Of a stretch of DNA of 64,000 nt, positions 2,630 to 58,733 are shown piece after piece; the first letter of the stretch is position 1; the number at the start of each line of letters is the position of its first letter. Location of the stretch: contig OZ199838.1 of the NCBI GenBank assembly GCA_964304625.1, positions 274,148-338,147 on the forward strand, given 5' to 3'. The translations under genes were made by a program, and so were the position numbers. The notes beneath the pieces are model-generated. The model saw only the letters and a list, made by a program, of their open reading frames with translations, did no database searches and was not told where the DNA came from. The stretch comes from Kudoa neothunni. Taxonomy: Eukaryota; Animalia; Cnidaria.

Positions 2630-5600
2630 TATACTTACATGTATCGTAAAAATTTTGAATAGTTTTTATAATGGTTCTTCCGCTCTGTGTCGCGCACGCG
2701 AATATAACAACTGACGACGAATCGAATCAGGATTCAACACCCATAACAACCAATACAACGAACCCGGTACCCACGTCAACTGACACGACCACTACCGCCC
2801 TGTACGGCGCCATTGGGGAATTCGACTCTATGAGTAATGACTGGTCCAATTACTTGGACAGATTTCGCAGTTACACGTTGATCAGCAACATTCCCGGAAA
2901 CGTCAAATTTACCCTCCTCTTGACGGTCTTCGGGAAGGACGACTACTGGACAATCACGGACTTGGCCAAACCACAAAAACCAACTGACATCTCATTCGAC
3001 AAGCCGATTGAAATGGTTAACAGCCATTGGAGACCCCAAACCTTGTTTATCCTGAAGCGTTTCAAGTTCTGCAGTATCAACCAAGGAGACCACGAGTCGA
3101 TTGCGGACTTCGCAAATCGGCTGAGAGCTGTCTCACACAGCTTTGACTTTGGAAACTTCCTCGGTCAAGCCCTCCGTGACAAGTTTGTCACTGGAAAACT
3201 CCCGGGTCTCAATGACATACAAGATACCCTTCTCACGGCTGATTACCACCTTGAGGAAGCGCTATCGTTAGTCAAAATCTGAGATGTCACCCTACGAAAA
3301 AGAGGCTATTAAACGAGGCGAATATAACCAACACAGTCTATAGACTAGCGACACCAGCCAGGGCTTTCTAACCGCTGCTTTCTATGTGATTCAAAAGACC
3401 CCCCCCCCTCCCTCGATAGGGAGTGCATCCACATAAACACTATCTGTTCCTATTGTGGGATCAAAGGTCACCAGGTCAGAGCACGCATGAGACGGAAAAA
3501 GGGACGGGCCCCACCATTGGGATAAATCCAACGTTCTCGACAGAGCGTTAACCCATAGCGGGTTTTCGTTGCTTTTTCGGCTCTGGTATATAACCGCCAT
3601 AAAAACTTTCATTATTTTTAAAATTTTATCATTTTTTTCCCATCAATTAATGAATGCATTTTTTATTTATTACTAAAGTATAATTATAGTTAATAATGTA
3701 TTTGTAAAGATATGATAATAAATAACTCATACCTTGTGCTTAGGTTATAATGCAACAAAAAATTTATGATATTAGTCTCTTTGAAGAGTATTTTTGTAAA
3801 TTTAGAAAAATTATATTTAGTTGTATGATATGAATTCAATTTAAGAACTAAAGACTTATCTAAGATAAGTTATAACGGATGTAATGTGAGGCCGAAAAAG
3901 CAACGAAGAACGACCGGCATGCTAAATCCTAATAATCCCACATTTGTTACTTGAGAGATGAGGTATAGGAATTTGATCGACGCAGTTGATGAAATTGATA
4001 ATAATGATGATGAAATTAATTGCATCGATATTGTAACATTACCTCCTGAAACAGTTGATATTTTAACGGACGAAGAAGAAAGTTTTGTCAGCCTAGATTC
4101 AGACAATGTTGACATCAGGAATGTCCCCGAAGTTTGCGGGGAAGTTGAGATATTTTCAACATTAGATGATGGTCAGACTGCTGAGAACTTCATGGCTAAG
4201 TGGGAAAAAATTCTTCATTCATCAAATTTATCAACCGATGCGGAAACTAATGTTTTTTCACAAAACAAAAATGAATTGCCAACAAACGTTTCGCTCGAAA
4301 AATACGATTCACTTGAAGCATTTTATGAATTTTTTGATGAAAGTTTATTGATGTACATTGTTAAACAAAGTAATCTGTACGCTCGCCAGAAGAATGACCA
4401 TTCTTTCCACTTATCGTTAAAGGAACTAAAATCATTCATTGGTATTTTGCTACTGCCTGGATATAACAAATTATCCCAACAACATATGTATTGGGAATCT
4501 GCAATGGACTCTGGAGTTGATATAGTCAGAAAGTACATGTCCTATAAACGCTTCAAGACTATAAAATCATATATTCATTTTAATAATAACGCCAATTTAG
4601 ATCCTGAAGATAAGCTCTTCAAACTTACACCAATAATAAAAAAACTGAATGAAAATTTTAAGAAATTTGGTATTTTCCATAATAACGTTTGTGTTGATGA
4701 ACAGATGGTTCCGTATACCGGTCACCACTCATGCAAAATGTTTATGAGAGGAAAACCAATTTGGTTTGGTTTAAAGCGGTGGATGTTGGCCTCTGCGGAT
4801 GGTTTTGTGTATAGCTTTGACGTTTATACAGGCAAGTCAGCGAAATATGATAAATATTTTGGCCTCGGTGGCAGTGTTGTGCTGAATTTTGCGGACGATC
4901 TTAAGGATAAATCAAACGCTCATATTTATATGGACAATTTTTTTACATCCTATAAATTGTTCGTTGAACTGAAGAAAAGATCCCTCAAAGCAACCGGCAC
5001 CGTGAGAACCAATCGTACTTCCAAATGCCCGCTTACAACAAATAAAGTGATGGAAAAATAAAATTGTTAAACCATATCCGGAATATCGTAACATGTTTAA
5101 TTAGCATTAGTGACCATGAAAAACTTACCAGAACATCGTCCTTATCCAAACTCCAAGCGTCATCATTGTGCAAAAAACCTTTGCTTATACCCATCCTGCA
5201 AAAAAGAAACGTAGATGTATAGTTTGTAAAAAAACTGCAATACATTTATGTACGAATTGCCAATGTTATATGCACATAAAATGTTCAATAAAATTTCATT
5301 AGGCATAATTATTTACAATTGTTTCACTTTAAACCAGCTGTTATTTGTTTACCGCAAACACAAACCTGCTACTGGAAAATCGCACGTCGGTAGCTTTTCG
5401 TTGCTTTTTCGGCCAATACTAATTCAATTGTAATTCATTAAATATTTAATATTTCAAAAATCTATTACACCAGTGTTAATTATTAATGATTTAATACATA
5501 TATATAAGTTATAAATAAAATCTAAACATTGGACCCGTTATGGGTTAAGTTAAAATAATCGACGTCATTATCACTGTCGAGAACTTAGATAATAATTTTG

Positions 5601-6724: not shown

Positions 6725-9700
6725 CAGAGGTCGGCAACCCATTCGGGTTGCCGGGCCGGGTAATCAAGCTGAACTAGAAGGCGGGCCAGAATATATATAA
6801 ATCATTTAGCTGTAATGAATTTTTCACAATGCAACTGGATGCTGGCTAAAGACATTCGAACTGCGATATTTAAAATTATATCGTTTAAGTGCGACGCGAA
6901 AAAAACAAAATAATTTTCTAAATTTATTCGTAAAATTGATGTATAATAATTAATGAGGAATTTTATAATTTGTTTTCTTCGCTACTTCAAGGATAGAAAT
7001 ATCCAGCTTCGTTGTGGAGAGCAACAAGATGTCATCGAGATGGTCATCATGTAACCTACTCCGAAACGTACCTTTGGTATATTTTAATTTCGAGAATAGC
7101 TGTTCGCGCGCATAAGTTCTCCCAAATGGCGATATTATTATTTTCGAGTTTTATAATAAATTTTTATATTTTCCAGTCGGCAATAGATAGTTTTTGTAAA
7201 GGCAGTGACTATTGGCCTGTCAGATCAGTTTTACGATTTTGTAATATTAAAAATAAGTAAAATTAGGTTTTTCATTTCCCAATTGTTAAATTACAAAGTT
7301 TATTTACAAACATATTTTTGATATTCGAGTCGTTCCATTTAGGAATTGTTACCGGCACGGCGTAATTATCGTTTTCAGCTATTATATATTTTTTCGCCTA
7401 AATTTGAGAATAAATTGATCTGGTGATCGCATCTAAATTAAACAGTGACGTTGAATTTTGTGAACCTTGTGTTTCGTGTAGCGAGGTTATTTGTACGCAA
7501 TGAACAGCAAAGAAAGTGGTGGAAGCAACCATGATGTTAACACTAACGAGAATAATTTTTTTAAAGTTGGTGATACGTTTAATAGCTTTGAAGAGTTAAA
7601 GTTGAAAATTGAACAGTTGGAATTACTCGATAAATATACGATGTCCGTATTAGATTGCAAAACCATTGAGAGTGGTCAAAAACGATGTGATCGAGTGTTA
7701 AATTCACTATTAAAATATTATCAATTAAAACATTGTTGTATCCATGGCGGAAAATAGGTAAATCGTTTTATTTTGTTAAATATTTTTTATTAAGGTTAAT
7801 TATTGTTTTGTCTTTAGAAATATTTTTATTTATTTGTTAAGTTATTTATTGGTTTCATTACTTTAGAGAAAGCGATCAACTGGTCAACGAAATACGAACT
7901 CTTATTATAAGGGATGCCCAGTGTTTTTAAGATTTCTAATAGACACCGATGGGAAAAAACTTGTGTTAAAATCTCCTAATTTATCACATAACCACGATTC
8001 TCTTGGTTTAACCTCAAAATTTTCGTCAAAGGCAAAAAAACTTAATGATGAGGAGATTACATATATCACCCAACATGTTGAATTTGACGGTAATTCAAAG
8101 GCTATCCAAGAAAAAATTTTAAGGGAGAAGGGAAAGTACATTTCACTGAAAAAGCTAAGAAACATTGAATATTAAATTAAGTTCCATTCAACCACAGTTG
8201 ATTGTATGTTAACTCTAAAAAATAATTCTAATGTATTTATTGAAGTGTTAAAAGGTGAAAATAATTTTAAGAGCCTTTTTTTATCAAAATTTGGACCTGA
8301 AAAAATGCTTAACAGCTTACCCCGAAATAATATTTGTTGTCGCCACATATAAATTATTAGATTGTAGGGCTCCAGTTTATTTTCTTGTGGTAATGGATGG
8401 AAGAGGAATGAGCGAGATTGTGGTAACAGGAATCCTCACTGAAGAAACTGAGGAAATATTATCGTGGTTTATTAAAACAATTAAAAAGCATAACCCAGTG
8501 ATAGAAAATGAGACTAAAATTTTTATGACAGACAAAGACATGGTAGAACGAAAAGTTTTAAAAAATATTTTTCCAAATGTTAACATTCAATTATGTCTTT
8601 ATCATGTCTTAAAAGCATTTAATCGTGAAATCAAGGTCGAGAAAATGAACATCAATTCTAAGGAAAAAGAAATTTCACTCTTTTACCAACAAAAAGTCTC
8701 ATACGCCAAAAACAATGATGAGTATAATTCTATAAAAAAACAATTTAAGGATAATGTAGGAGAAAACGTTTATCGTTATTTTAAAAATAATTGGCATACC
8801 ATCAAAGATGAATGGGTTATTGGTTTACGGAGATACGATGGAATGTTCTTAAATTTTACCAATAATAGAATTGAAAGTGTCAATTCCAAAGTAAAGCAAG
8901 TGATTCCATTGTTTTCCTCTTTTGAAGAATTTTTCAAGAAGTTTCTGGTTTACATAAATACTTTAAGAATGGAGAATGATAATAAGGCTGTACAAGAAAT
9001 TTTAAAGACTCCTCAAAAATTCATTGATCCTGATATAATCGAGTATTATAATTATTTAACCAAATACCCATTTCAAATGAACATTCTAAAGTTCTTCTAT
9101 CGCCAGAAAACATCGGTGACGAAATTCTTCAAGATAGTTTTAATATGTCTTTTAATGATAAATGTGGTTGTCCCTTTAGAATCAGCGTGAACTTACCATG
9201 CTGTCACGTATTTACATATCGGAAAAAATGTAATCTTCCACTTTTTGATAAATCTTTGTGCTCCAAGAGATGGACGAAAAAATACTTTATTAAAAATTCC
9301 AGGCTGCAAGAAAATGTTTGCGAAAAGAATGATGTCGACTTTGGAAGCGATTCTATTACTTTCAGTTCTTTATCCAAGAATGTTCAATATTCAGAACTGG
9401 AAAAATTTAATGAAGCTTCTTGGTTAATGAAAACTGTCGCTGCTAGAATCTCAGAAAAAACAGGTCCTGAATATAATTATTGGATAGATATGCCGAAACA
9501 GTTTGTGGAATGCGTTGAAAATAATGAAAAAATTGCGATAACAAGATTTAACGATAATGACTCTACACGTGAGGTCTCAACAGCCTCAAGCAAAAACATC
9601 ACTGTGTCTAAAAGTATTTATCTATATAATATAATGTAATATTAATTTTTATTCTTATAGAATCAGAATTACATCATTGTCCTATAAACGAAAGTCAACA

Positions 9701-34320: not shown

Positions 34321-37300
34321 CTATTGAATTTTATTTGAATTAGAGGGGGTTTGGTCGAATGCATTAGTGACAGTAGTGTGCGGTTGCTGATGATATTCAG
34401 CGGGGTTTTGAGTGTTACCAACTTCTTCATCAACTTGGGCGTTATTACCATGGTCGGGTTCAACTGATGCATTCAGAGTGTCCTCAGCAGAAATCACTTC
34501 AATAAGGCCATTAATAGGCCGCAGATGAGTTTTACTGGAGGGGATCCTATTGTTGGTGTCACCTATAGGTAAGCTGCTTTTTATAGTAGCTTCAGTGAGA
34601 ATAGGATATGGTGGTGGTAATGTTGAAGTTTCTGTAACATTGGTACCAGCAGCAAAAACTGTTTGAGGGATGACACCATCGATCAGGACGGCATCGTTAT
34701 GTACATCAGCAACGGCAGTACTGGCAACATCATCCTCATGCGAAATAGGAAGAAAAACACTGTTGAATTTGTTGGACTGCGAATTAGCAGTAACTGTATT
34801 CGGGTAGTCATTCATCCCAGCCATATTATTAACATGATTCCCATCATAAATACTATGATCTGTCGCTCCAATAGTACTGGCAGCGGCTGCGGCGGCCGCT
34901 GCAACTTCAGGAACGACTTTACGAAAACGTGACAATTTCTCGGTGGGTGCTTGGGCGAATTTTTGACTGGGTTCTTCGGTCACTATCATAAATCGGTTTT
35001 TCTTAGAAACGCCACTGGCTTTGCTATTATCACTATGGAAATTGTTCTGTGCATATGGTTCGGATGATTCGGAGGTGTCTCGCGGTTGAAGATGAATATC
35101 ATCAGGATGTTCGTAGACAACAGTTTGATGGTTGTGTGGTTGCTGTTGTTGTTGTTGTTGCTGTTGCTGTTGCTGGTTTATGGGGAAGTTGGGGTTGTTG
35201 CTGAGTGTCGATACATCATTTTGATTGAGTTGTGGATTGATCAAAGCAGTTGGATGAACAATTTGAATCTTTTGGGCATGTGGACCGATGTCCCCACCAA
35301 CATATTGATGATTTTGTTGATTTCCAGCAAGCATGGCGTGTTTACGACTGTCCCATGAGAAATAGAGGGTTCGAGCTCCATTCTTTGACCCGAACCTAGT
35401 GTAAACGGGGTAGGTTTGATAGGGCTGAGCTTGAGGAGGTGGTGGTGATGGCGCAGTTGGATGAACAACGGGAGGTGCAATGATTTTCTCATGATAAGAG
35501 CTATTCATACACGTGGCTGTGTCTACTTTTTGATGACACCATCCATGTGTCATATCATGTCTACTATTCCACATGTTTCTGTTACGTAAATCAACTTGTG
35601 AAAAGTTATTCCCAGTTGGAATAGAACGATCGCAGGCAACTGGTGCACCAGCTGTCGAGACTGGAGGAACATTAACACCAGCACCAGCGGCGGCAGCGGC
35701 AGCAGCAGCAGCACTGGGATAAGTGCATGTATTAAAACTGGAATTTTTATTCAAATGTGAGCCAGCAGTAACAAAACTTTTGTCCACATTGATTGGTGGT
35801 TGAGGGAGTTCTTCATAGACGTTGGAAAAACTGTTCAAACGAGCACAATGATCGTCGAATGGGTGGTAACCACAATTCATTCGATTAGTGCTGTTGTTAC
35901 AACAGAGATATTTTAAAAATGAATTTTCCTTTTTTAACAACTTGTATTTTTCTTGATAATAAGTGACTTCATTTTCTAACGCGGATAGTTTGGTATCATA
36001 TTGAGTTATAGATTGTTTGTAGCGGTTTTCCAACTTGGCGATGTTGATTTTGCTTTTAAGCTTGAGATTTTCAAGTTTTTTCGATAGCAACGCGTTGATT
36101 TCAATTAAATATTTTTGACCGCGATAATCTGGCACAAACTTAGGATAGTCATATAAAGTGGGATAGTCATTGCTCCCATAGAGACCAACTGAAGAATCTG
36201 ATGAATCGCTTAGATCGTGTTCGCATTTGAACTCGTAATTTCCATGACGAGCATTATTTTTAAATTTTGAATTAGGAACAATAGGTGGATTGACAACCGA
36301 AGTGCAATCAGCACTATAGGGATGATTGAGGTTGCAATGATGACAAAAAGGTTTTCTTGAAGCATTCAAATGGGCGCTACTCTTCGCATTTGATTTGTAA
36401 TCACGATCGTGATATTGATCGGAAGCTCGTATAATAGGAACAGCTAAAATAATTATAACATTAGCAATAGAAGCGCACAAAATCCACCCAATACAATAGA
36501 TTACTATTATGGGGGTTGTGATTGTAGGCGGATCGTACAAACGGAGGTGAAACTCTCCTCTTAGCAGTATCACCAAACACACGATGAAATCCAATCTCAT
36601 CTAATGTAACATAGCTGGAGTTGTTTTCATCGACATCATCAACATTAGGGGATCTGTAGGAATCAGTTATATCACGAAAACCACCATTTTTAGTGAGTGT
36701 TCGGTTAGGTGAAGGTTCCAACTGATGAGCCTGTCGAGTTTGTTTGGTTGCAGCAGGCAGTGGCACTTTCGGAGAGTCTTGATTATGCTTGTAGGTACGG
36801 TATTTTTTTCTTTTTGTTGTAAATCTCGACCCTTTATCAGAACTACCCAACGCAGTGGAGGGGGTGGTATTGTCCAACAACATAACACCAGTAGTAGACA
36901 AACCAGAAGAGGTATAATCCATTTTTTTACGTGGATTAGAATTATGTAATCCAGTAATTTTCTTATGTGGTGTTTGGTGAGGTGGATCTCTTGTTGAAGT
37001 GCCACACTCAACTATGAGTCAAAATAAGATATGCGACAAATAGGCACATAGTTAAATCACTATTTTTTAAACGTGCCTCTCCTTTACGAGGGCCGCTTGA
37101 AGATGGATGGTGGTCGGATGTGGTTTTATTTGTGTTCTTACGCGTAGGATAAGCTTGATTTTGCATATGCGTAGAAGAAAACCAATGGATTCTATTGCAA
37201 CTATCTGCTAACGAATTGCTATCAGCGGTTGGATCCAAATATTCACCTATCCCACAAAACACACATACAACTTTCTATTCATAACCACCGATCTAATTAC

Positions 37301-46091: not shown

Positions 46092-47787
46092 TTTGTATGC
46101 GATACATCCCCAAGTTCGTACACAGATACAGTAGTACTGTAGTTTAGCTGATGTTTTAAAAGAAATAAAATATTTTATTCCAAAAAATAATGCATTGCTG
46201 AATTTTGATAGGAATATTTCTCCTAATATTGATTACAAAAATTCATTGTGAACGAATCACACAATCATGTTAATACATTGACTTAATATCTTCGAACTAG
46301 AGGATCCCCGACCCTCGATTTTTTGAAGCCCTATTTTCGACACACCACCACCCCTCGCAAAAGCTTTGTTTTTAAATGGTGTCATACAACCTCTAAAATG
46401 TTTGTATGATCCTTGTCAGCTGTAACGTATTTTTTTAAGTGGTTTATAGTTATATGGTTATACCCATAAATTCTTAATCGTTTGTACACTCTCCATTCGT
46501 CTGTGTATATTGTGGAGCCATGTGATACCTCTTGAATAATTAGGGTTATAAGGATATATTTATCCCATCGATGCACAATGAAAAATCTTGACTCCAGCAA
46601 TTTACGTTTACCTTTATCATCAACATAACATTCAAATATCCCAACTACCCACGGACCTTCTATTCTGTTCCCATATATTTAGACATTAGCACCACCAGAA
46701 TCGTCATCCACGTCATCATCAGGTGATGATGGAGAATACGTTTCATTAGGAGTACTTCTCCAGACATCTGCTCCCAAGTACCTACCACGATTATTTTTCT
46801 GTTTTACCCCCAAAAGGCATTATTCTATTTCAATAATTCTTTATCCGTCGAACTTTTCACGCCGCTGAAAACTTCCCCGACAAATTTTTCTTAAAGACGA
46901 GTACGAATATATACTGGTTTTGCCTGTTATTCCAGTTAAAATAATCGCCTGACATTTAAGCTTTTCTATGGCCCAAAAATAAACCAGCTCAAAAATATCA
47001 GAGACCGATAGCTTGGAAGAATTATCTTGAAATTTATTCATTATTTTAAAGTAAGTTGAGGCTCTTGAAGAGAAGCATGTCTTACAATCACTTCTACAAG
47101 TATGTTCATAATAATTTCAGAAACATTAAATCACTTTTAAAAAATATAAGTGAGTTTTTCTGATTCACGGGTAAAATGTAGGTTTGTGGAATTGTTTTTT
47201 AACCTTTGTTCACTCCTTAATTTATGGGTGTTTACCTACGTTAGTTTTTGCACCTGTTCGGCATTTCCTGTAATAGACCTTTCTCGGTTAAGAAGTTTAG
47301 CAAAGTTTCTTGATCTAGAAATAACTTGTAAAACTGGCGCTTTGACTTAGATTCTATCATTACTAAGCTTCAGTCAGTAGTGTGTTTCAAAGAATTTTTA
47401 AATATAACTCACCAATTCATCTCTGATCAAAATTGTTCAAACTAATAATTAAAATCACAAAAACTATATCTAACACCAAGAATGTATAACCAAAGTAAAG
47501 ATCTATTGATAATTCCTATAATATCATAAAATTTAACCAAACTGAACATAATAATAGCCTCAAAGTTGTATATATGCGGAAACTTAGGGAAATACAGCAT
47601 AAAAAACGCGCCAAGTTGTGCGCACGCTACCATAATTGCTGAACCAACATTTTTGATTTTTTAAAGCTGATATTTTGAAAGATATTAATGATCACTCCAT
47701 ATTTACAAAATAGAAACAGATGATTTATTAAAAAATTGGTTGACGTGGGCATGCGCACATGACGAATTTGGGAAGGTGGATACTCCC
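46092..47787 (-). mobile_element. Second Merlin (IS1595/ISXO2-like) transposon remnant
   Basis: GPWVVGIFE, RFFIV..WD...L...I..V..GSTIYTDEWRVY..L...GYNH.TINH....HTN.LE; LVYFW; weak terminal match CCCAARTTCGT. Confidence 0.8.
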
Positions 47788-48798: not shown

Positions 48799-49743
48799 AT
48801 GCTCAAAAAAATGAGATTTGTTTCAATATGCGTAATTGCTTGCTTGATAGCATTGATAGCAGTGTAGTTCGATTGATACGAAAAATTGATTTTAATTTTT
48901 TATTTTTAAAGTAAATATCGACCTACTGTTAAAGAATTTAAAAACCTTTGTTACACTACCAAAAAACTTCAACAGTCATACCCGTATCACATTCTACTAG
49001 CATTTTTCTTTATATATGTTGGGTATGTGATTTTCGTTGTGAGCAAGATTGCTAAGTTGATTACCCCATTAGAATGCAATCTTTATGTATCCCTGGATCA
49101 TTGTTATTAAGTGTTCTCTCTGGATTTCTTTTTCCCACACCGATTGCTCTTCTTTTAGTCTGTGCAGTAAATGGATACTAATGTAGTTATAACTGATCGA
49201 TGAAATATATTTTAGTGCTGCTCTATTGGTTCAATGTTGTGTTATTATGTCAGTGGTGCTATTTGTAACTCTCTCGTAGAACGGTATTTCACTGAGAGTA
49301 TTATGAAAATGAGAAATCTGGTACGGTTGGCTAACCCGATTTTTGATGATAAATTGATGAACTTATTTCGATTTTAGGTGCATGTCTACAGCGATAATAT
49401 GATTGCTTTGATTGTACTTTTGAGGATTGCTCCGTTTATACCCAATTCCGTCATAAACTTAATCACTCCATTGGTAGCTGTTCCAAAAAAAGCATTTTTT
49501 ATTGGCACTTTTCTTGGTGTGGCGCCTGCGTCTCTTGGCCACATTTTAGCTGGAAAACAACTTCATTCATTAGCCTCAACCTCTCATCCTCTAAATTATT
49601 ATTCTGTTGGTGGCCTAGTAATAGCTGTCGTGCTTATTGTAGGACCAATGGTTTTTAAAGATAAACTTTTGAAGTCGAAACTTTATACAAAAATTACAAT
49701 CGACCCTAATTCCTTGGCGGGGCATTCGTCGTGTTTGAAATAA
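48799..49743 (+). CDS. TMEM41B: TMEM41 (VTT/DedA-domain lipid scramblase, TMEM41B-like), 5 exons, 246 aa
   Basis: Exons 48799-48863, 48912-49022, 49073-49166, 49216-49320 and 49378-49743 join in frame through GT-AG introns. Motifs MQSLCIPGS..LSVLSGFLF, IGSMLCY, LRIAPFIPN..IN, FFIGTFLGVAP. Confidence 0.88.
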
Positions 49744-50628: not shown

Positions 50629-52690
50629 CCCTTAAAGGAAAACCCTGGGCTCTTCGAGACTAACCACGTGATACATTGTCAATTACTTAGGTTGGACTAA
50701 TTTTGTTCGGTTCAAATTTTACGTAAATTCATCAAAATTAATTATCTATCAATCGGTTTTATTTATAAATAAATTTTTCCATGGTTTTAGGACCATTTTT
50801 CATCTTTTTGGATATATCATCTGACACTGAAAGTATATTTTCAAACGAACTAAAAAATTTCTTGGAAGATAATAACGAATTCAACGAAAAATTAATAAAA
50901 GAATTTGACGGTTAGTTTATCGAAAAAGTATAAAATCTTCATTTCAATATTCATAGATTCATCTAAGGGGCAACTTAATGTACTAAATCAACATTCTTCT
51001 CCACAAATTGTCTCACATGAATGTAACACTCGAGATCCCATTAAAGATTATTTGTAGAAAGATACATCTATTATTTGAACATTCCAGCCCACTTCTGGAC
51101 GAACTTCCTGTCATAATACAATAGACCGCAGTATTGTACAAGGGAAGCCAATTGATTCCTTCGTTTTAACGACGCCCGTTGATTGTTTCAATCATTTCAT
51201 AACTAAACAAATGATGGAAGAAATCATGTTGTACACCAGTCACAAAGGCAACGATGAGATGGGAGATAAATGGAAGCATCTCGACCTGATTGAATTAAAA
51301 GCTCTTTTGGGATTGTTGTTGTTGTTAACTGATGTCTACAAATCCAATTTTGAAAATACGCAAATTTTGTGGGATGAAATTCATGGGAGGTCCTTATTTC
51401 GCGAAACGATGAGTCGGGATAGATTCAAAATAATTCTACGTATATTGCGTTTTGATGAGGATAGGACCAGAAACAACAATCCTAGCTCGCAAAATAAATT
51501 TTCACCGATAAAAAAATATTTGATGAATTTACTAACACTGTATAACTAGCTGTATCCCAGGTCTTAATTTAACTGTTGATGAACAGTTGTATCCTTGTCG
51601 GGGGCGAGTTTCATTTTTGGTTTACATGCCCAGAAAACCGTCGAAATACGGTTTAAAATTCTGGATTGTTTGCGACAGCGACACATTTTATTTTTCAAAC
51701 ATAATTCCATATTTTGGTAAAATTTACAGTTACCATGAATCCAACCTACCTTTTAATGTTGTGGTAAATCTAACACATCATCTTTTGGATGCAGGTCATA
51801 GTATCACCCTCGACAATTATTTTACTTCATGCGAACTGGCTGAATATTCGTATGAAAGGAAAATATCAATTCTTGGAACTGTGCGTAAATGCAAAACTGT
51901 AGACACATAGATCAAGAAAAATGTTTTCGTTGCTATTTGGTTTTTACAAAGTATTCACTCTTATTTCGTATATTCCGCGTAAAAACGGGGCAGTGGTTGT
52001 TCTTTCATCAGAACACCGTACTCAAAATGTATGTAAAGAATACCATGCTAGGACCAGTCAATTTTAGACTACAATCAAAAAAAAATGCGGCGTTAACATA
52101 TTCTTGCAAGAGAAAATGTCGACATTGACCATTCGCGATGTTTTGCCAATTATTAGATGTGGCTGCATTCAACACATGCAATTTTCATAAATAGAAACAC
52201 TACCTATATGAGAACTGATAAAACTGGTAGAAGACAAAGATTCCTATTGGATATGTCCTATTCGTTAATAAAAGACTAACAAGAAAGAAGATTCGAAAAT
52301 CCATTAATTTTTTATACCCAACCCGCTTTGAAACGCTCGATGGGAATTATTGGATATCAATTTTCCAATAATGAATCAAACCTAATCCAAATCTGCGAAG
52401 ATAAAAGACGAAAAAGATGTCACTTTTGTTCAAGTCTCATAATTCGTAGGAATAAACAAGTGTGTTCTCTTCGCAAAAAAGTGTATGTAGCGAGCATTCC
52501 ACGAGAAATATTACTTGTTTTGATTGTATTTCAAAAAATTAGTAGATAATTTATTCTTATTTTTTTCTTATCAATGCGTTATTATACAACATAGCTAATT
52601 TTAAGAGAGACCACGAATTAACACATTAATATTATAATTAATCCGGTTAATGTATCTGCGCTCGTGGAATCCAGGGTTGTCCTTTAAGGG
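50629..52690 (+). mobile_element. piggyBac element (PGBD4-like) with degenerate transposase
   Basis: TTAA at 50625-50628 and 52691-52694; 20-bp TIRs CCCTTAAAGGAAAACCCTGG / CCCTTAAAGGACAACCCTGG (19/20). MSRDRF..ILR.LRFD, TVDEQL, KPSKYGLKFW, TLDNYFTS, RKRCHFC. Confidence 0.93.
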
Positions 52691-53216: not shown

Positions 53217-54702
53217 GCATGCGTAATTGCCCTGTTGGATTAAAAACTTCCGTGCCACTTATTAATCTGTTATATCACGCGAATTAAATCGTTTTTATTG
53301 GAAACGGGCGAAAAATTTTGTTTAAAGACAATGGTAGTTGCCAATTAGAGAATGTTACGGATGCACATAAATAAAGATTTTAGGGTCAAAACAAAATAAT
53401 TTTTTCATATTGCATCGAAAAGTAAATAAGAAATAAAATGGTATTTATAATTTTTTGAAATGACCATTCACTAAAATTTATCCCAGTGTAAAATGATATT
53501 TATTTATAAATATCATTAAAACAAAAATTACAAATTATTTGTCAATCAATAATTTTAGTAATGGTTTTTTATTCTATTTAAATAAAAGGTGTAATACCCA
53601 TGCTGAAAAATGGAGAAAACACAAGAACAATTTCATGCGCACGCATACTCGATGCATATCGGTTACCTACTGCACATATTTTAAACTCTTGTGAACAATA
53701 TTATCTTGCTTTTTTTTAAGCGTAATAAATAACATTTCTATCAAAACTACGTATGTGGCAATTCTGGATTTTGTGCGATGACATTGATTTTTTTGATTAC
53801 GCATAACACATAAGTCATTCTAGGTGTCTGAGATTTATTATGTATGTGTGTCACGTGATCACACATTTTAGTACTATTTTATTTAAAAATTCTAAGACAT
53901 TTTAACCGTCTAATATTTCGACGTGACACATTTATATAAAGAACTCCAAATTTTGTAGTATTTAGAATGTCTGAACTAAATTTTGATCTAAACGATTCCA
54001 TCAGAAAAATATATTTTAATTTAGACAAGCCGTGTGATTTAAATTTTAAAAATTAACTTATCTGCTTTATTTCATTTAAATCATTATGATTTGGAATATT
54101 AATAATTTTAGAGTATGAGGAAATATTTGGAAATCATAATGCCGGCAACCTTAAGCAGGATAATTAAAATTTCAGTGTGTAATTATGAATTTATTTCTTC
54201 GCGTTTTCAGCCAACGAATCATAACAATATGTTCCAACTAAAGCCTAAAAATTACAATAATTGTATTTCAAAAATTATTTCCCCAACTGCTCAATAATCT
54301 GTTTTAAAAATCACTTAACTTCCTTACGATTTACAAATAGGCTCCCGAAAATTGTTTATCATTTCTCAATAACTTTATTATCTACTATACAGTGAATCCG
54401 CCAATATTTGGATTATTAGAATAATTTTATTATAGTGAGAGTTGGTTTGTTGACGCAACAATCACTTCTTACATTTACTCTCGAATCTATACCCTAATAT
54501 CCATACTATATACGAATGATGATTTTGCATTTATTAGATCTATTTTTCAACCAATGGCTGAGCAATAGTTATCATTTTCGCGAATGGGAGAATAACAACA
54601 ATAACACTAGGTGAGATATTATAACAATAGATAACAATAAGTTACAGGAGATTATCGTATTAACTGAGTATTTTATTGGTCATGTTGAACAAATCTAACA
54701 AA

Positions 54703-55647
54703 ATGAAACCTTACCATACTCGTATGGCTATTTTGTATTCATGGGGTTCCAGATTAAGCAGTAGTGATTCGGATTTTATGAATTCGTATCATCGAAATCC
54801 TACCAACATTCGAGAAGAAAAACTGTAAATAATAATTCTAACTAAATATATTGTTATTGAGTTGCAGTAATGCAAAACTGTATTGATTATTATAGTTTCT
54901 AGGAATCTTTAATTATTTCTTTTGTGATATAATCTATTATTCGACGTAGGGAAACAAGTCTTAAAAATGACAGAACTTTAGGGCAAAAAATTAAATCCTT
55001 ACTGAATCTTACCATAAAATCTTCGACATCAACTAATTCGAATGAGGGCAATAGGTAAATAAATTTTCCTATTTTGATTTATGTGTTGAATGAAACTATA
55101 TGAATGTGTTTACAGCAAGGACGATAGCTGTAAAATTCGCCCAAGGAAGGATCTTTCAGTCATCGAAGTTCATTACCTTATTAGTTCGTGGGGGATTCTG
55201 ATTTACCGATGCAATCTCAACAATAAAAACCTTTTCTTGGATATTATCAAGGGGTTAGTTTATAAAGTAGTTGAAATTTATATTTTATTCGTAGGAAAGT
55301 TAAAAAAGACAACGACGTGGAATTAGCTCTTGAGGATTCGTTTTCTCTACCAGAATATTGTCAATCCCTCTCAACTTCACTTGGCAACATCATATTCAAC
55401 ATTGATCGCGACGTCCTTATACATCGGCATTTGGTTGAGTTTTACTCTCTTTTTCAAAGTTACTTCTCATCCATACTAACTCTGGAGGTATTTCATTCTA
55501 GTTGGTTAGTTTTACGCTTATGATTTTCTTACAATCAAGGAACTGGAAACGGAACTTGTTATCCAACTGAAGCTAGAATTAAATGATATTTTTGGGAAAA
55601 AACATGAAAGTAGCTGGAAACATTTTTTTGCAAAGATCAGAAGATGA
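54703..55647 (+). CDS. Globin-fold protein lacking heme-ligand His, paralog 1 (5 exons, 221 aa)
   Basis: Exons 54703-54824, 54950-55054, 55116-55253, 55295-55487 and 55540-55647 join in frame (666 nt, all GT-AG). Helix A LSVIEVHYLISSW; helices G-H ELVIQLKLELNDIFGKKHESSWKHFF. Confidence 0.8.
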
Positions 55648-57476
55648 GCTGTCTACTTCTTCCAAGACTTAATATACCACTAAAATAATCTATATGCTAT
55701 TCTTAATTTACATTATATTCAATTATCAATGAATTATATTGCGTGTGAGATGTTTTATCCAAATTTTTTATTTATATTAGCTGTTATCAATAAAAATGAA
55801 CGTTCTTATCGGATTTCAAAGTACTAATTTAATTTGCTGTCTTTTCAGCGAATTGTAAAATTTCGAATTAATTTTTAAATGTTTTAAGTCAATTTTTCAA
55901 GTTTTTGTTTATTTAATTTAGACTTAAATCATCTAAAAATTTCATACTATGCAAGGTTACATTAACCACATTATTTCTCATTCACTTTTTCATTAACATT
56001 TTTTCAATCATTATTATTTTGAAATAATTATTTTTTAAAGGCCAATCGTATTCATCTAATTTATTATTTATTAATAATTTAATAAAAATTGGGATGAAAT
56101 TTATAAATATTTGATTTTTAGTTTTAATAATTGGGTTGTGATAATATTTCGATAAAAATCGTGAAGCTGTTGCTAACATTTAAGATATCTGTTCGTAATG
56201 TGCGAAAAAAATATTCAATAAATTAAAAATATGAATAATTATAGATAATGACATTTTTTCGTTACTCTCCCTGAAATTTATTACTTTCAAAATATTATCG
56301 ATAAAAGTAATAACTGATATAATCAACAAATTTCCCTCCATTCTTTTGAAAGTACTTCTTAGTAAGGATCGCTTACTTAAAATTAATATAGAATTAGATA
56401 TAAATCCAAATATTATTCATGGTCACAATGTAATGAAGAGTTATTTTATTCTGTGTAAAATATTACATTTTAAGGTAAAAATAATTACACTATTTACAAT
56501 CCTACAATCTAGCTGATATGAAAATCTCATGCCGCCATCTCAATCATATCAATAAGAACTGGATTTTATTTTCACTTTATTACTATTTGTTAAACATATA
56601 AATTCAACAAAAATTATTTCTGAAACCTACCCAAAACCCCCTTAAGCTTTTATTATTTCGGATAAGTTGATTGGAACCCATAAAATCATTTGCGTGACCT
56701 TACTGGTGATAAAGATTAAACATTAACACTATTAAGTACAGTTAACTTACTGTGAGATTATTTTCAAAATTTATAATACTTTCGGTAGTATCTTTTTATT
56801 TTAATAACTTTTGACGATCACCGACAAAGTTTCATAATTCCCTTTAATAGCAGTGGTTTTGTGACACTTGCCTGCGGAGCCTTGAATCGAAACTTATTGT
56901 ATTGAGACTAACGCGGATAACTCAATAATGTTGGACTTTGGTGAAAATAATTACTTAAAAACATTAGGTATAAAAATGAAATTTGGATCGTGTCATTAAA
57001 TTTTAAGTTTCATCTTATTCCACTAAATTACGTAAAAATGTAAAGCAAACCTTAAAAGTTTGATGCGCTCATTTCACATTACTTAACACATATTTATACT
57101 GAGAATAATTTATTTTGAAATTAATAACTGAAGAAAATATTAATAACAATTGTTTAATCACCTATGGACTGTATCGTCTGTTAGACATGAATCGTCATTC
57201 AACCAACAGCTAGTCTGATAAAGTAGTTTTAAATAAGATTGGTAATGCATGAATTAAATTCGTTATTTAAATATCACACTTACACGAGAAATCATTAAAT
57301 TAATTACTCATAAGATCTATTAGATCTTGTGATAAAATACGACCGTTATTAGCCCCCTAATTTTCCAATTATTAGCTTTAATTCGTAAATTATTTTTAAA
57401 ATAAAATAATTTTGTGAAAGATTATTGAAATAGAACTTAGATTTCATTATTTACACCTGTTGAAGATAGTAAAAGA

Positions 57477-58420
57477 ATGAGGTCTTACCATACTCGTACG
57501 GCCCTTTTGTATTCATGGGGTCCTACAGAAACCAGCAGTATTTCTGATTATATCAACTCTTATCATCCAAACGTTGAACACAATCAGACCCAACCGTAAT
57601 TCAGATGCATTAAAATAATATTGGTGTTCGACAGCTGGGATAAAACTATTTTTTTTATCGAGGAGATTTCATATGATCTAACCTTTGCAATCTAGTTAAT
57701 TTTATTATTCATTTAGGAGCTCAAATGTTAGGAAACAAGGAACATCAAACCGCAAACACCAAACGCTTCTTAATTCAACACCAAAATCTCCCACGGAAAC
57801 CACTACCAGTGAAAGTTATAGGTATATATTTGTACTGAAATCATTTAATTATATAAATTCAGAATATTTGTTATATTTTTTTAGCAAAGAAGATAATGTT
57901 AAAAACCATAATAGAAAATCTCTTTCGCCTATGGAAGTAAATTACCTCATAAGTTCGTGGGGAATATTTACATACAGGTGTAGTCAGTTAAATAAAAACG
58001 CCTTTCTGAGTATAATTAGAAAGTATTCCATTAAATACAGCTGATGTTTCAATTTTGATCATAGGAAAGTAACGAAAATTGATGAAGTTGAGATAGGTCC
58101 CGAAGGTTTGATCACTCTACCAGAATATTGCGAAACATTTGAAAGTGCCCTAGGAAACATGGTCTTTAGTATCGACAAAGAAATCGTTTTGCACCGTTAT
58201 TTGGTTGATTATTACATATTATTTCAAACCTATTTTTCAACATACCTAACAATGGATGTAATTCACATCGTTTGATTCGTTGTATTTTATTTTTGCAATC
58301 TAGGAATTGGAAAATGAATTAATGATACTACTGAAATTAGTATTGAAAGATATATTCTGTAAGAAACATGAAAATGCTTGGGAAAAATTTTTTGTCAGAA
58401 TTGCAAAGCATTCTAAGTGA
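57477..58420 (+). CDS. Globin-fold protein lacking heme-ligand His, paralog 2 (5 exons, 218 aa)
   Basis: Exons 57477-57595, 57732-57821, 57885-58022, 58065-58257 and 58304-58420 join in frame (657 nt). Same intron phases and identical exon 3/4 lengths (138/193) as paralog 1. LSPMEVNYLISSW ... LKDIFCKKHENAWEKFF. Confidence 0.82.
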
Positions 58421-58560
58421 CTGCCGAAAAAATGCAAATCCACAAAATTACTCTAATTAACTAAGTTTTTCATTTAAATCTAATTGTTGAAAACTTTATT
58501 TTCTAAAATTTATCTATTTATCGGTAATCATAAGGACTCATCTAAAATTAATTTTAAAAA

Positions 58561-58733
58561 TGGCTATTGACATTGCAGATAACATTGTGGTGTCACTAGT
58601 TCGGACTATATTTTATTATTTCTGGTCATAAGAACAAAGAGGTTAGTCAGCATTAATTAAGTATAATGGATTTAAAAAATTAAATCTGTATATAGCTTAT
58701 GAGTAAGAATCATGGGAATTAAAAATTTACCGT
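58561..58733 (+). repeat. ~180-bp dispersed repeat, copy 2 (homolog of 53040-53216)
   Basis: By-eye alignment with copy 1. Confidence 0.6.

Follow-up and report, generated by a model that had tools for sequence, protein, structure and literature searches.

We analyzed a 64,000-nucleotide stretch of Kudoa neothunni DNA (contig OZ199838.1, positions 274,148 to 338,147; hereafter the window) that carries a tandem pair of five-exon genes, g1 and g2, at positions 54,703 to 58,420. The descent of g1 and g2 from the genome's own globin family is well supported by comparison of the encoded proteins and intron positions, and both genes are under purifying selection. On balance, we favor the interpretation that the pair is a globin offshoot kept by selection as a heme-free module, an interpretation in which the absence of heme, the function and a Phe at the proximal F8 position are deduced from sequence. 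On the same grounds, g1 and g2 are probably no longer ordinary oxygen-binding globins.

The window corresponds to 274-338 kb of a 17-Mb contig, has a GC content of 27-36%, and belongs to a 40.3-Mb genome of four contigs with 30% GC. Positions 54400-58700 were read and gene models were built by script, which confirmed the tandem pair: g1 and g2 lie head to tail on the plus strand, have five exons each, and encode proteins of 222 and 224 residues, respectively. All eight introns have GT...AG ends and are 41-125 nucleotides long, and their phases are 2, 2, 2 and 0 in each gene. An AATAAA hexamer is found 142 nucleotides past the g1 stop codon and 333 nucleotides past that of g2.

Exon 1 of g1 (54703-54824) contains the start codon and encodes an N-terminal motif, M-x-x-YHTR...LYSWG, that is kept in g2; its counterpart, g2 exon 1 (57477-57595), shows 72-77% nucleotide identity to it. 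Exon 2 (54950-55054 in g1; 57717-57821 in g2) encodes in g1 a basic linker rich in Ser, Thr and Asn that is probably disordered, judging from its composition and isoelectric point (pI). Exon 3 (55116-55253; 57885-58022) is assigned to globin helices A-B and ends, in both genes, with a phase-2 intron 21 residues past the Trp of an SSW motif; with this Trp at A12, the intron lies at B12.2. Exon 4 (55295-55487; 58065-58257) would comprise a remnant of the C helix and CD region followed by helices E, F and G1-G6. It includes a Tyr assigned to E7 (55356-55358; 58126-58128), a His conserved in both genes (55422-55424; 58192-58194) and a Phe at the F8-equivalent position (55452-55454; 58222-58224). 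Exon 5 (55540-55647; 58304-58420), which follows a phase-0 intron at G7.0, is assigned to G7 through helix H, has a Trp at residue 26 (within NAW in g2), and ends with the stop codon.

The g1 and g2 proteins are 50% identical overall and 54% identical in exons 3-5, and direct repeats between the two genes are detectable at the DNA level only in parts of exons 1 and 5. A Nei-Gojobori comparison gave proportions of synonymous (pS) and nonsynonymous (pN) differences of 0.71 and 0.29, with saturated dS and a dN/dS ratio (omega) of about 0.16 (bootstrap 0.09-0.31). Exons 3-5 taken separately gave pS 0.82 and pN 0.26, and an omega of 0.49 for exons 1-2 indicates weaker constraint in that part. Ten open exons, matching intron phases and the excess of pS over pN, in a genome of 30% GC, exclude random open reading frames and demonstrate that g1 and g2 are real genes. 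Since synonymous sites are saturated and pN is low, the duplication is old and both copies are constrained. A previous interpretation of this DNA, made from the letters and open reading frames alone (the sequence-only reading), had described two intact five-exon genes with shared intron phases, both of them apparently maintained, and the splice sites, the phases and an omega below 1 bear out that description.

These data also bear on the possibility that g1 and g2 are decaying or silent globin relics, either young pseudogenes or unexpressed copies that have no function. Three RNA runs labelled as the same species yielded zero aligned reads, as did a DNA run, and the organism may be absent from the RNA runs. 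The DNA around the genes is rich in transposons, with remnants of piggyBac, MULE and ISXO2-like elements, and none of the collections searched contained a relative. However, decay or recent silencing is difficult to reconcile with a pN of only 0.29 and an omega of this size at saturated synonymous sites, with the intactness of both five-exon frames and of 16 of 16 splice sites, or with DNA similarity that persists in coding parts only. We therefore regard relics as a very improbable explanation.

To place the pair, the globins of the same genome serve as comparators. A PF00042 search of the whole genome retrieved three tandem globins, A, B and C, at 1.99 Mb of contig C1 (G000:C1:1992775-1996732, minus strand; L009 1775-5732) and a fourth, globin D, at 1.47 Mb (G000:C1:1471655-1472478, plus strand; L008 exons 1007-1191, 1437-1641 and 1699-1830). 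All four are canonical three-exon genes, and the central exon of each matches the Pfam Globin family with 19.8-26.1 bits. Globins A-C each carry His at E7 and F8 and Phe at CD1, and their introns fall at B12.2 and G7.0. The nearest solved match of the canonical globins is a cytoglobin, with whose E7 and F8 their two invariant His residues align. Globin D, of 173 residues, is the canonical globin closest to g1 and g2; its C/CD region is unusual in that the Pro-x-x-x-x-Phe motif is missing, and it carries a basic N-terminal tail of 29 residues. A word-index search with one exon of the A/B/C cluster found no relative among 5.8 billion proteins, which indicates that this lineage's ordinary globins, too, have diverged strongly.

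The gene structure of these four globins recurs in g1 and g2. In A-D, a phase-2 intron lies 21 residues past the A-helix Trp in 4 of 4 genes (globin C has Phe in the Trp column), the central exon has 68 codons, the span from E7 to F8 is 32 residues, 11 residues lie between His F8 and the phase-0 intron at G7.0, and the last exon has Trp at residue 26 in globins A, B and D. In g1 and g2, the span from Tyr to Phe is likewise 32 residues, 11 residues separate this Phe from the phase-0 intron, and the last-exon Trp is at residue 26; the central exon is shorter, at 64 codons. The last two introns of both genes thus occupy the ancestral B12.2 and G7.0 positions of canonical globins, in the same phases. 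The sequence-only reading had already placed the last intron at G7.0; the spacing and phase in the four canonical globins support that placement, and the preceding intron at B12.2 adds a second shared position.

Sequence similarity follows the same register. BLASTP of g1 exon 3 against globin D exon 1 gave E=3e-4 with Trp on Trp; g1 exon 4 against the globin D central exon gave E=0.009 at an offset of +4, so that Tyr pairs with His E7 and Phe with His F8; and g2 exon 5 against the globin D last exon gave E=4e-5, ungapped from residue 1 of each. Profiles of exons 3, 4 and 5 compared by hhalign with the corresponding A/B/C exon profiles gave P=0.0021, 0.043 and 0.007 in the same register, with Trp on Trp in exon 5. 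We further scored ungapped BLOSUM62 similarity with the introns as anchors, which leaves no alignment freedom; segment lengths were set by eye beforehand and were not tuned. This anchored score reached z=6.1 against A-C, a value that none of 200,000 permutations attained; against D it was z=7.9, with z=5.4 for the last-exon segment alone. Offset 0 was the best of 17 offsets (-8 to +8) in all three segments, and canonical globins scored against one another gave z=7.5-8.8. When the exons were joined into one domain, hhalign against the joined canonical set returned a score of 36.5 (E=2.4e-5, probability 76%) over 127 columns, from helix A to helix H. The reversed query scored 9.0, column shuffling gave at most 18.9 and block shuffling at most 33.1 (100 shuffles of each kind).

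The core of the fold was assessed with a myoglobin-fold template of buried positions (PMC4527676), mapped by the intron anchors; positions in the C helix and CD region were unmappable. Template positions were hydrophobic in 24 of 31 cases in g1 and 26 of 32 in g2, against null expectations of 13.5 and 15.3 (p<5e-5), and canonical globins gave 23-28 of 32. Taken together, collinear in-register exon matches, shared B12.2 and G7.0 introns, anchored z values of 6-8 and the hydrophobic core pattern support a globin derivation of g1 and g2, which the sequence-only reading had also proposed; here the derivation stands on four canonical globins of the same genome instead of on neuroglobin. Both proteins very probably retain the globin fold.

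Library searches weigh against this conclusion and would accord with a likeness that arose by chance between helical proteins, the pair then being an unrelated orphan family. The searches were made exon by exon. In Pfam at E<=10, the ten exon peptides together produced a single match, a chance one of 13 bits to Mgm101p; the g1 and g2 peptides accordingly failed to match the Globin profile PF00042 and showed no membership in RsbR_N, photoglobin or the phycobiliproteins. Three exon profiles found only chance matches among PDB sequences, exon 4 found no usable match in the ESM Atlas, and the exon-4 profile searched against 1.84 billion representative proteins returned four repeat-rich junk proteins and no homolog. 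The JGI metagenomes scanned gave no match, and no ortholog from another species was present in the collections searched. Structure prediction was made on parts of the proteins: a three-chain complex of exons 3, 4 and 5 as separate chains scored 0.01, a value that speaks neither for nor against the fold, AlphaFold2 folded the central exon fragment into two helices with a predicted local distance difference test value of 66, and Foldseek found no match for that fragment model. For the central exon of a canonical globin, AlphaFold2 merged E and F into one uninterrupted helix, which is unnatural, and F8 can therefore not be located from fragment folds.

A chance likeness would nonetheless have to account for three independent exon pairs that are collinear in the register imposed by two introns of shared position and phase, for permutation and shuffle controls that never reached the observed scores, and for a fold template satisfied as well as by canonical globins. 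We consider it extremely improbable, and a globin origin is strongly supported. Ordinary annotation would label the pair as orphan genes; the present case illustrates that homology missed by profile searches can still be recognized from conserved intron positions. Within the 40.3-Mb genome, searches with exons 1, 3 and 4 and with the exon-4 profile found only g1 and g2 as copies. The own-genome searches as a whole revealed no intermediates or extra copies beyond the pair and the four canonical globins, and exon 1 with its N-terminal motif has no third occurrence in the genome.

We then considered the residues of the heme pocket. The E helix fits a single register, scoring +17 at offset 0 and no higher than -4 at any other offset, and this register places Tyr (in LPEYC) at E7 in both genes. 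Neither gene has an equivalent of Phe CD1 or of the C-helix Pro motif, features that are conserved or invariant in A-D; in g1 and g2 the stretch is charged and four residues shorter. The globin pairing of Phe CD1 with His or Gln at E7 is thus absent from both genes. Tyr at E7 and the loss of Phe CD1, both of which the sequence-only reading had reported, are robust assignments.

The residue at F8 calls for a more guarded statement. The distance from E7 to the phase-0 intron is 44 residues in 6 of 6 genes, and an indel-free alignment anchored on the introns therefore puts Phe (in YSLF/YILF) at F8. End-anchored Needleman-Wunsch alignment with gap costs of 11/1 does the same. In the intron-anchored register E11 is Leu or Phe, F4 is Phe or Tyr and F5 is Tyr, and the conserved His (in LIHR/VLHR) lies 10 residues N-terminal of the Phe; the residue counts and bulky side chains given in the sequence-only reading are all upheld. 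Its assignment of Phe to F8 held in these two alignments and not in others, and several results weigh against it. The F/FG half of the central exon is at background in the anchored register (-17 versus about -20), and its best offset is +10, which places the conserved His under F8, with a z of about 2.4 over 19 offsets that is not significant. MAFFT also puts this His under F8, by means of a 10-residue gap and a 10-residue insert, an arrangement that the sequence-only reading had itself named as a rival, and hhalign of the joined domain yields a third alignment of F8. With the F-helix register at background and MAFFT and hhalign in disagreement, the assignment of Phe to F8 draws on parsimony and the intron anchor and receives no support from residue similarity.

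This ambiguity gives room for an explanation in which g1 and g2 are still heme proteins with non-canonical ligation. The conserved His could be the proximal ligand after rebuilding of the EF/F region, with Tyr distal, or the E7 Tyr phenolate or an adjacent conserved Cys could ligate ferric heme. Tyr at E7 occurs in trematode hemoglobins, and a Tyr phenolate ligates ferric heme in human Hb M E7 Tyr variants. The MAFFT alignment and the top-scoring +10 offset fit the first version, the Tyr, Cys and His are all kept between paralogs whose synonymous sites are saturated, and most heme-facing core positions are still hydrophobic (B10, E11, E15, F4, G5 and G8). On the other hand, alignment of the His with F8 requires that a deletion of 10 residues be offset exactly by an insertion of the same size, the +10 signal is not significant, and the E7-to-His span would shrink from 32 residues to 22, even though the E helix aligns at full length. 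Phe CD1, invariant in A-D, is without counterpart in a C/CD region that is partly deleted and charged, and template positions F4 and FG4 become acidic in the His register. Retention of heme by such means is, in our estimate, unlikely, although it has a better claim than the relic or chance explanations.

The His as F8 was thus tried and dropped as the primary reading, given the two compensating indels and the non-significant +10 signal. Phe is preferred at F8 because the E7-to-intron distance is constant in the six genes, because the rival needs two indels that compensate exactly, and because only the anchored register gives hydrophobic residues at F1 and F4; replacement of the proximal His F8 by Phe is probable on this basis. 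The Tyr, the Phe, the adjacent aromatics, two Cys and the His are identical between g1 and g2, which indicates that the Tyr, Phe and other replacements predate the duplication and are themselves maintained.

Outside the pocket, the two proteins differ from canonical globins at both ends. Exons 1-2 encode 88 residues with a pI of about 9.6 and a Ser/Thr/Asn/Pro content of 38-47%, and the region from residue 89 to the end is an acidic domain of pI 5.9. The 88-residue basic, Ser/Thr-rich extension is probably disordered. At the other end, globins A, B and D have an H helix that exceeds that of g1 and g2 by about 6-9 residues.

These features can be combined into a proposed history. In it, g1 and g2 would stem from an old tandem duplication in a lineage-specific offshoot of the animal's own globin family; this offshoot would have kept the globin gene architecture, with B12.2 and G7.0 introns, and the hydrophobic core pattern of the 3-on-3 fold. 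Before the duplication, the offshoot would have exchanged the distal His E7 for Tyr and lost Phe CD1 and the C-helix Pro motif along with a four-residue deletion, and most probably the proximal His F8 was replaced by Phe beside newly aromatic F4 and F5. The lineage would also have gained two upstream exons encoding the extension with its conserved N-terminal motif, which may supply targeting or regulation. The domain would no longer bind heme canonically, and selection would keep a heme-free helical module that could act as a binding or regulatory scaffold or offer a pocket for a small hydrophobic ligand. The broadest form of this proposal, that an animal lineage turned a globin into a heme-free family, kept it through an ancient duplication and fused it to a new disordered N-terminal extension, is plausible and we advance it tentatively, just short of an even chance.

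The remainder of the window contains several other coding features. About 2.8 kb upstream of g1, at 51211-51910 on the plus strand, lies a piggyBac-type transposase that is broken across two frames scoring 49 and 75 bits. A 367-residue open frame at 3958-5061 (plus strand) carries a piggyBac-type transposase domain, DDE_Tnp_1_7, with 214 bits, and may be an intact element. An open reading frame with a MULE transposase/ZSWIM RNaseH-like domain lies at 8255-9190 (plus strand), and a fragment of an ISXO2-like (IS1595-family) DDE transposase domain, of 43 bits, at 46382-46600 (minus strand). An exon-like open reading frame at 49378-49743 (plus strand) shows a VTT (TVP38/TMEM64-type) membrane domain with 33 bits, slightly below the Pfam cut-off. 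The longest open frame of the window, 759 residues at 34321-36600 (minus strand), has no Pfam match at E<=0.001.

Among known proteins, globin D offers the closest comparison. It shares with g1 and g2 the B12.2 and G7.0 intron positions and phases, the A-helix SSW motif, an E-helix L-x-N-I-I-[YF]-N-[LI] block in the same register, and a last exon that opens with E-[FL]-E-N and contains an AW-x-KFF motif with Trp at residue 26. It differs in its His E7 and His F8, its 68-residue central exon with an aromatic CD region, and its three-exon structure encoding 173 residues, where g1 and g2 have Tyr and Phe instead, a four-residue CD deletion, a shorter H helix and two extra 5' exons. Neuroglobin and cytoglobin resemble g1 and g2 in their 3-on-3 globin architecture and in having introns at the ancestral B12.2 and G7.0 positions; however, exon profiles of g1 and g2 gave no direct match to any solved globin in the PDB sequence search. 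Neuroglobin carries an additional intron at E11.0, whereas g1 and g2 have none inside the E helix.

Animal globins without His F8 are already known. The Daphnia pulex monodomain HbL has Tyr or Val at F8, and HbL2 of the ostracod Puriana has Met CD1, Val E7 and Val F8; the role of each is unknown (PMC7457136). These HbL-type globins, which we liken to g1 and g2 by description only, are likewise animal globin paralogs in which otherwise invariant heme residues are substituted. They are, however, sporadic members of recognizable globin clades, whereas g1 and g2 form an old, selected pair beyond the reach of Pfam, with aromatic substitutions and an added N-terminal extension. The Kudoa pair is older, more diverged and clearly constrained. 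Globin surveys commonly demand His F8 for inclusion (PMC4527676), and His-less descendants of globins go uncounted as long as this residue is treated as defining and used as a filter. If our interpretation is correct, surveys with such an entry requirement would have systematically missed families of this kind.

Non-heme globin folds have been described from bacteria, in the RsbR N-domain, the sensor domains of Bacillus anthracis sporulation inhibitors and photoglobin, and from phycobiliproteins (PMC7475203, PMC8717448). In these proteins a globin fold exists without heme and the pocket is closed or re-used, which provides a possible functional analogy to g1 and g2. They differ in being of prokaryotic or plastid lineage and in having no detectable sequence similarity to g1 and g2, whose origin from an animal globin would be independent. 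The heme residues were lost before a duplication of saturation age, and continued selection on both copies argues that the globin fold can be re-used in animals beyond heme chemistry. If loss of heme is confirmed, the pair would provide a natural system in which to address a ligand-binding or regulatory role, the closure of the pocket, and the frequency of families that fall below profile thresholds. The g1 and g2 proteins would then be a eukaryotic equivalent of the non-heme globin sensors of bacteria, and the first in animals that lends itself to testing.

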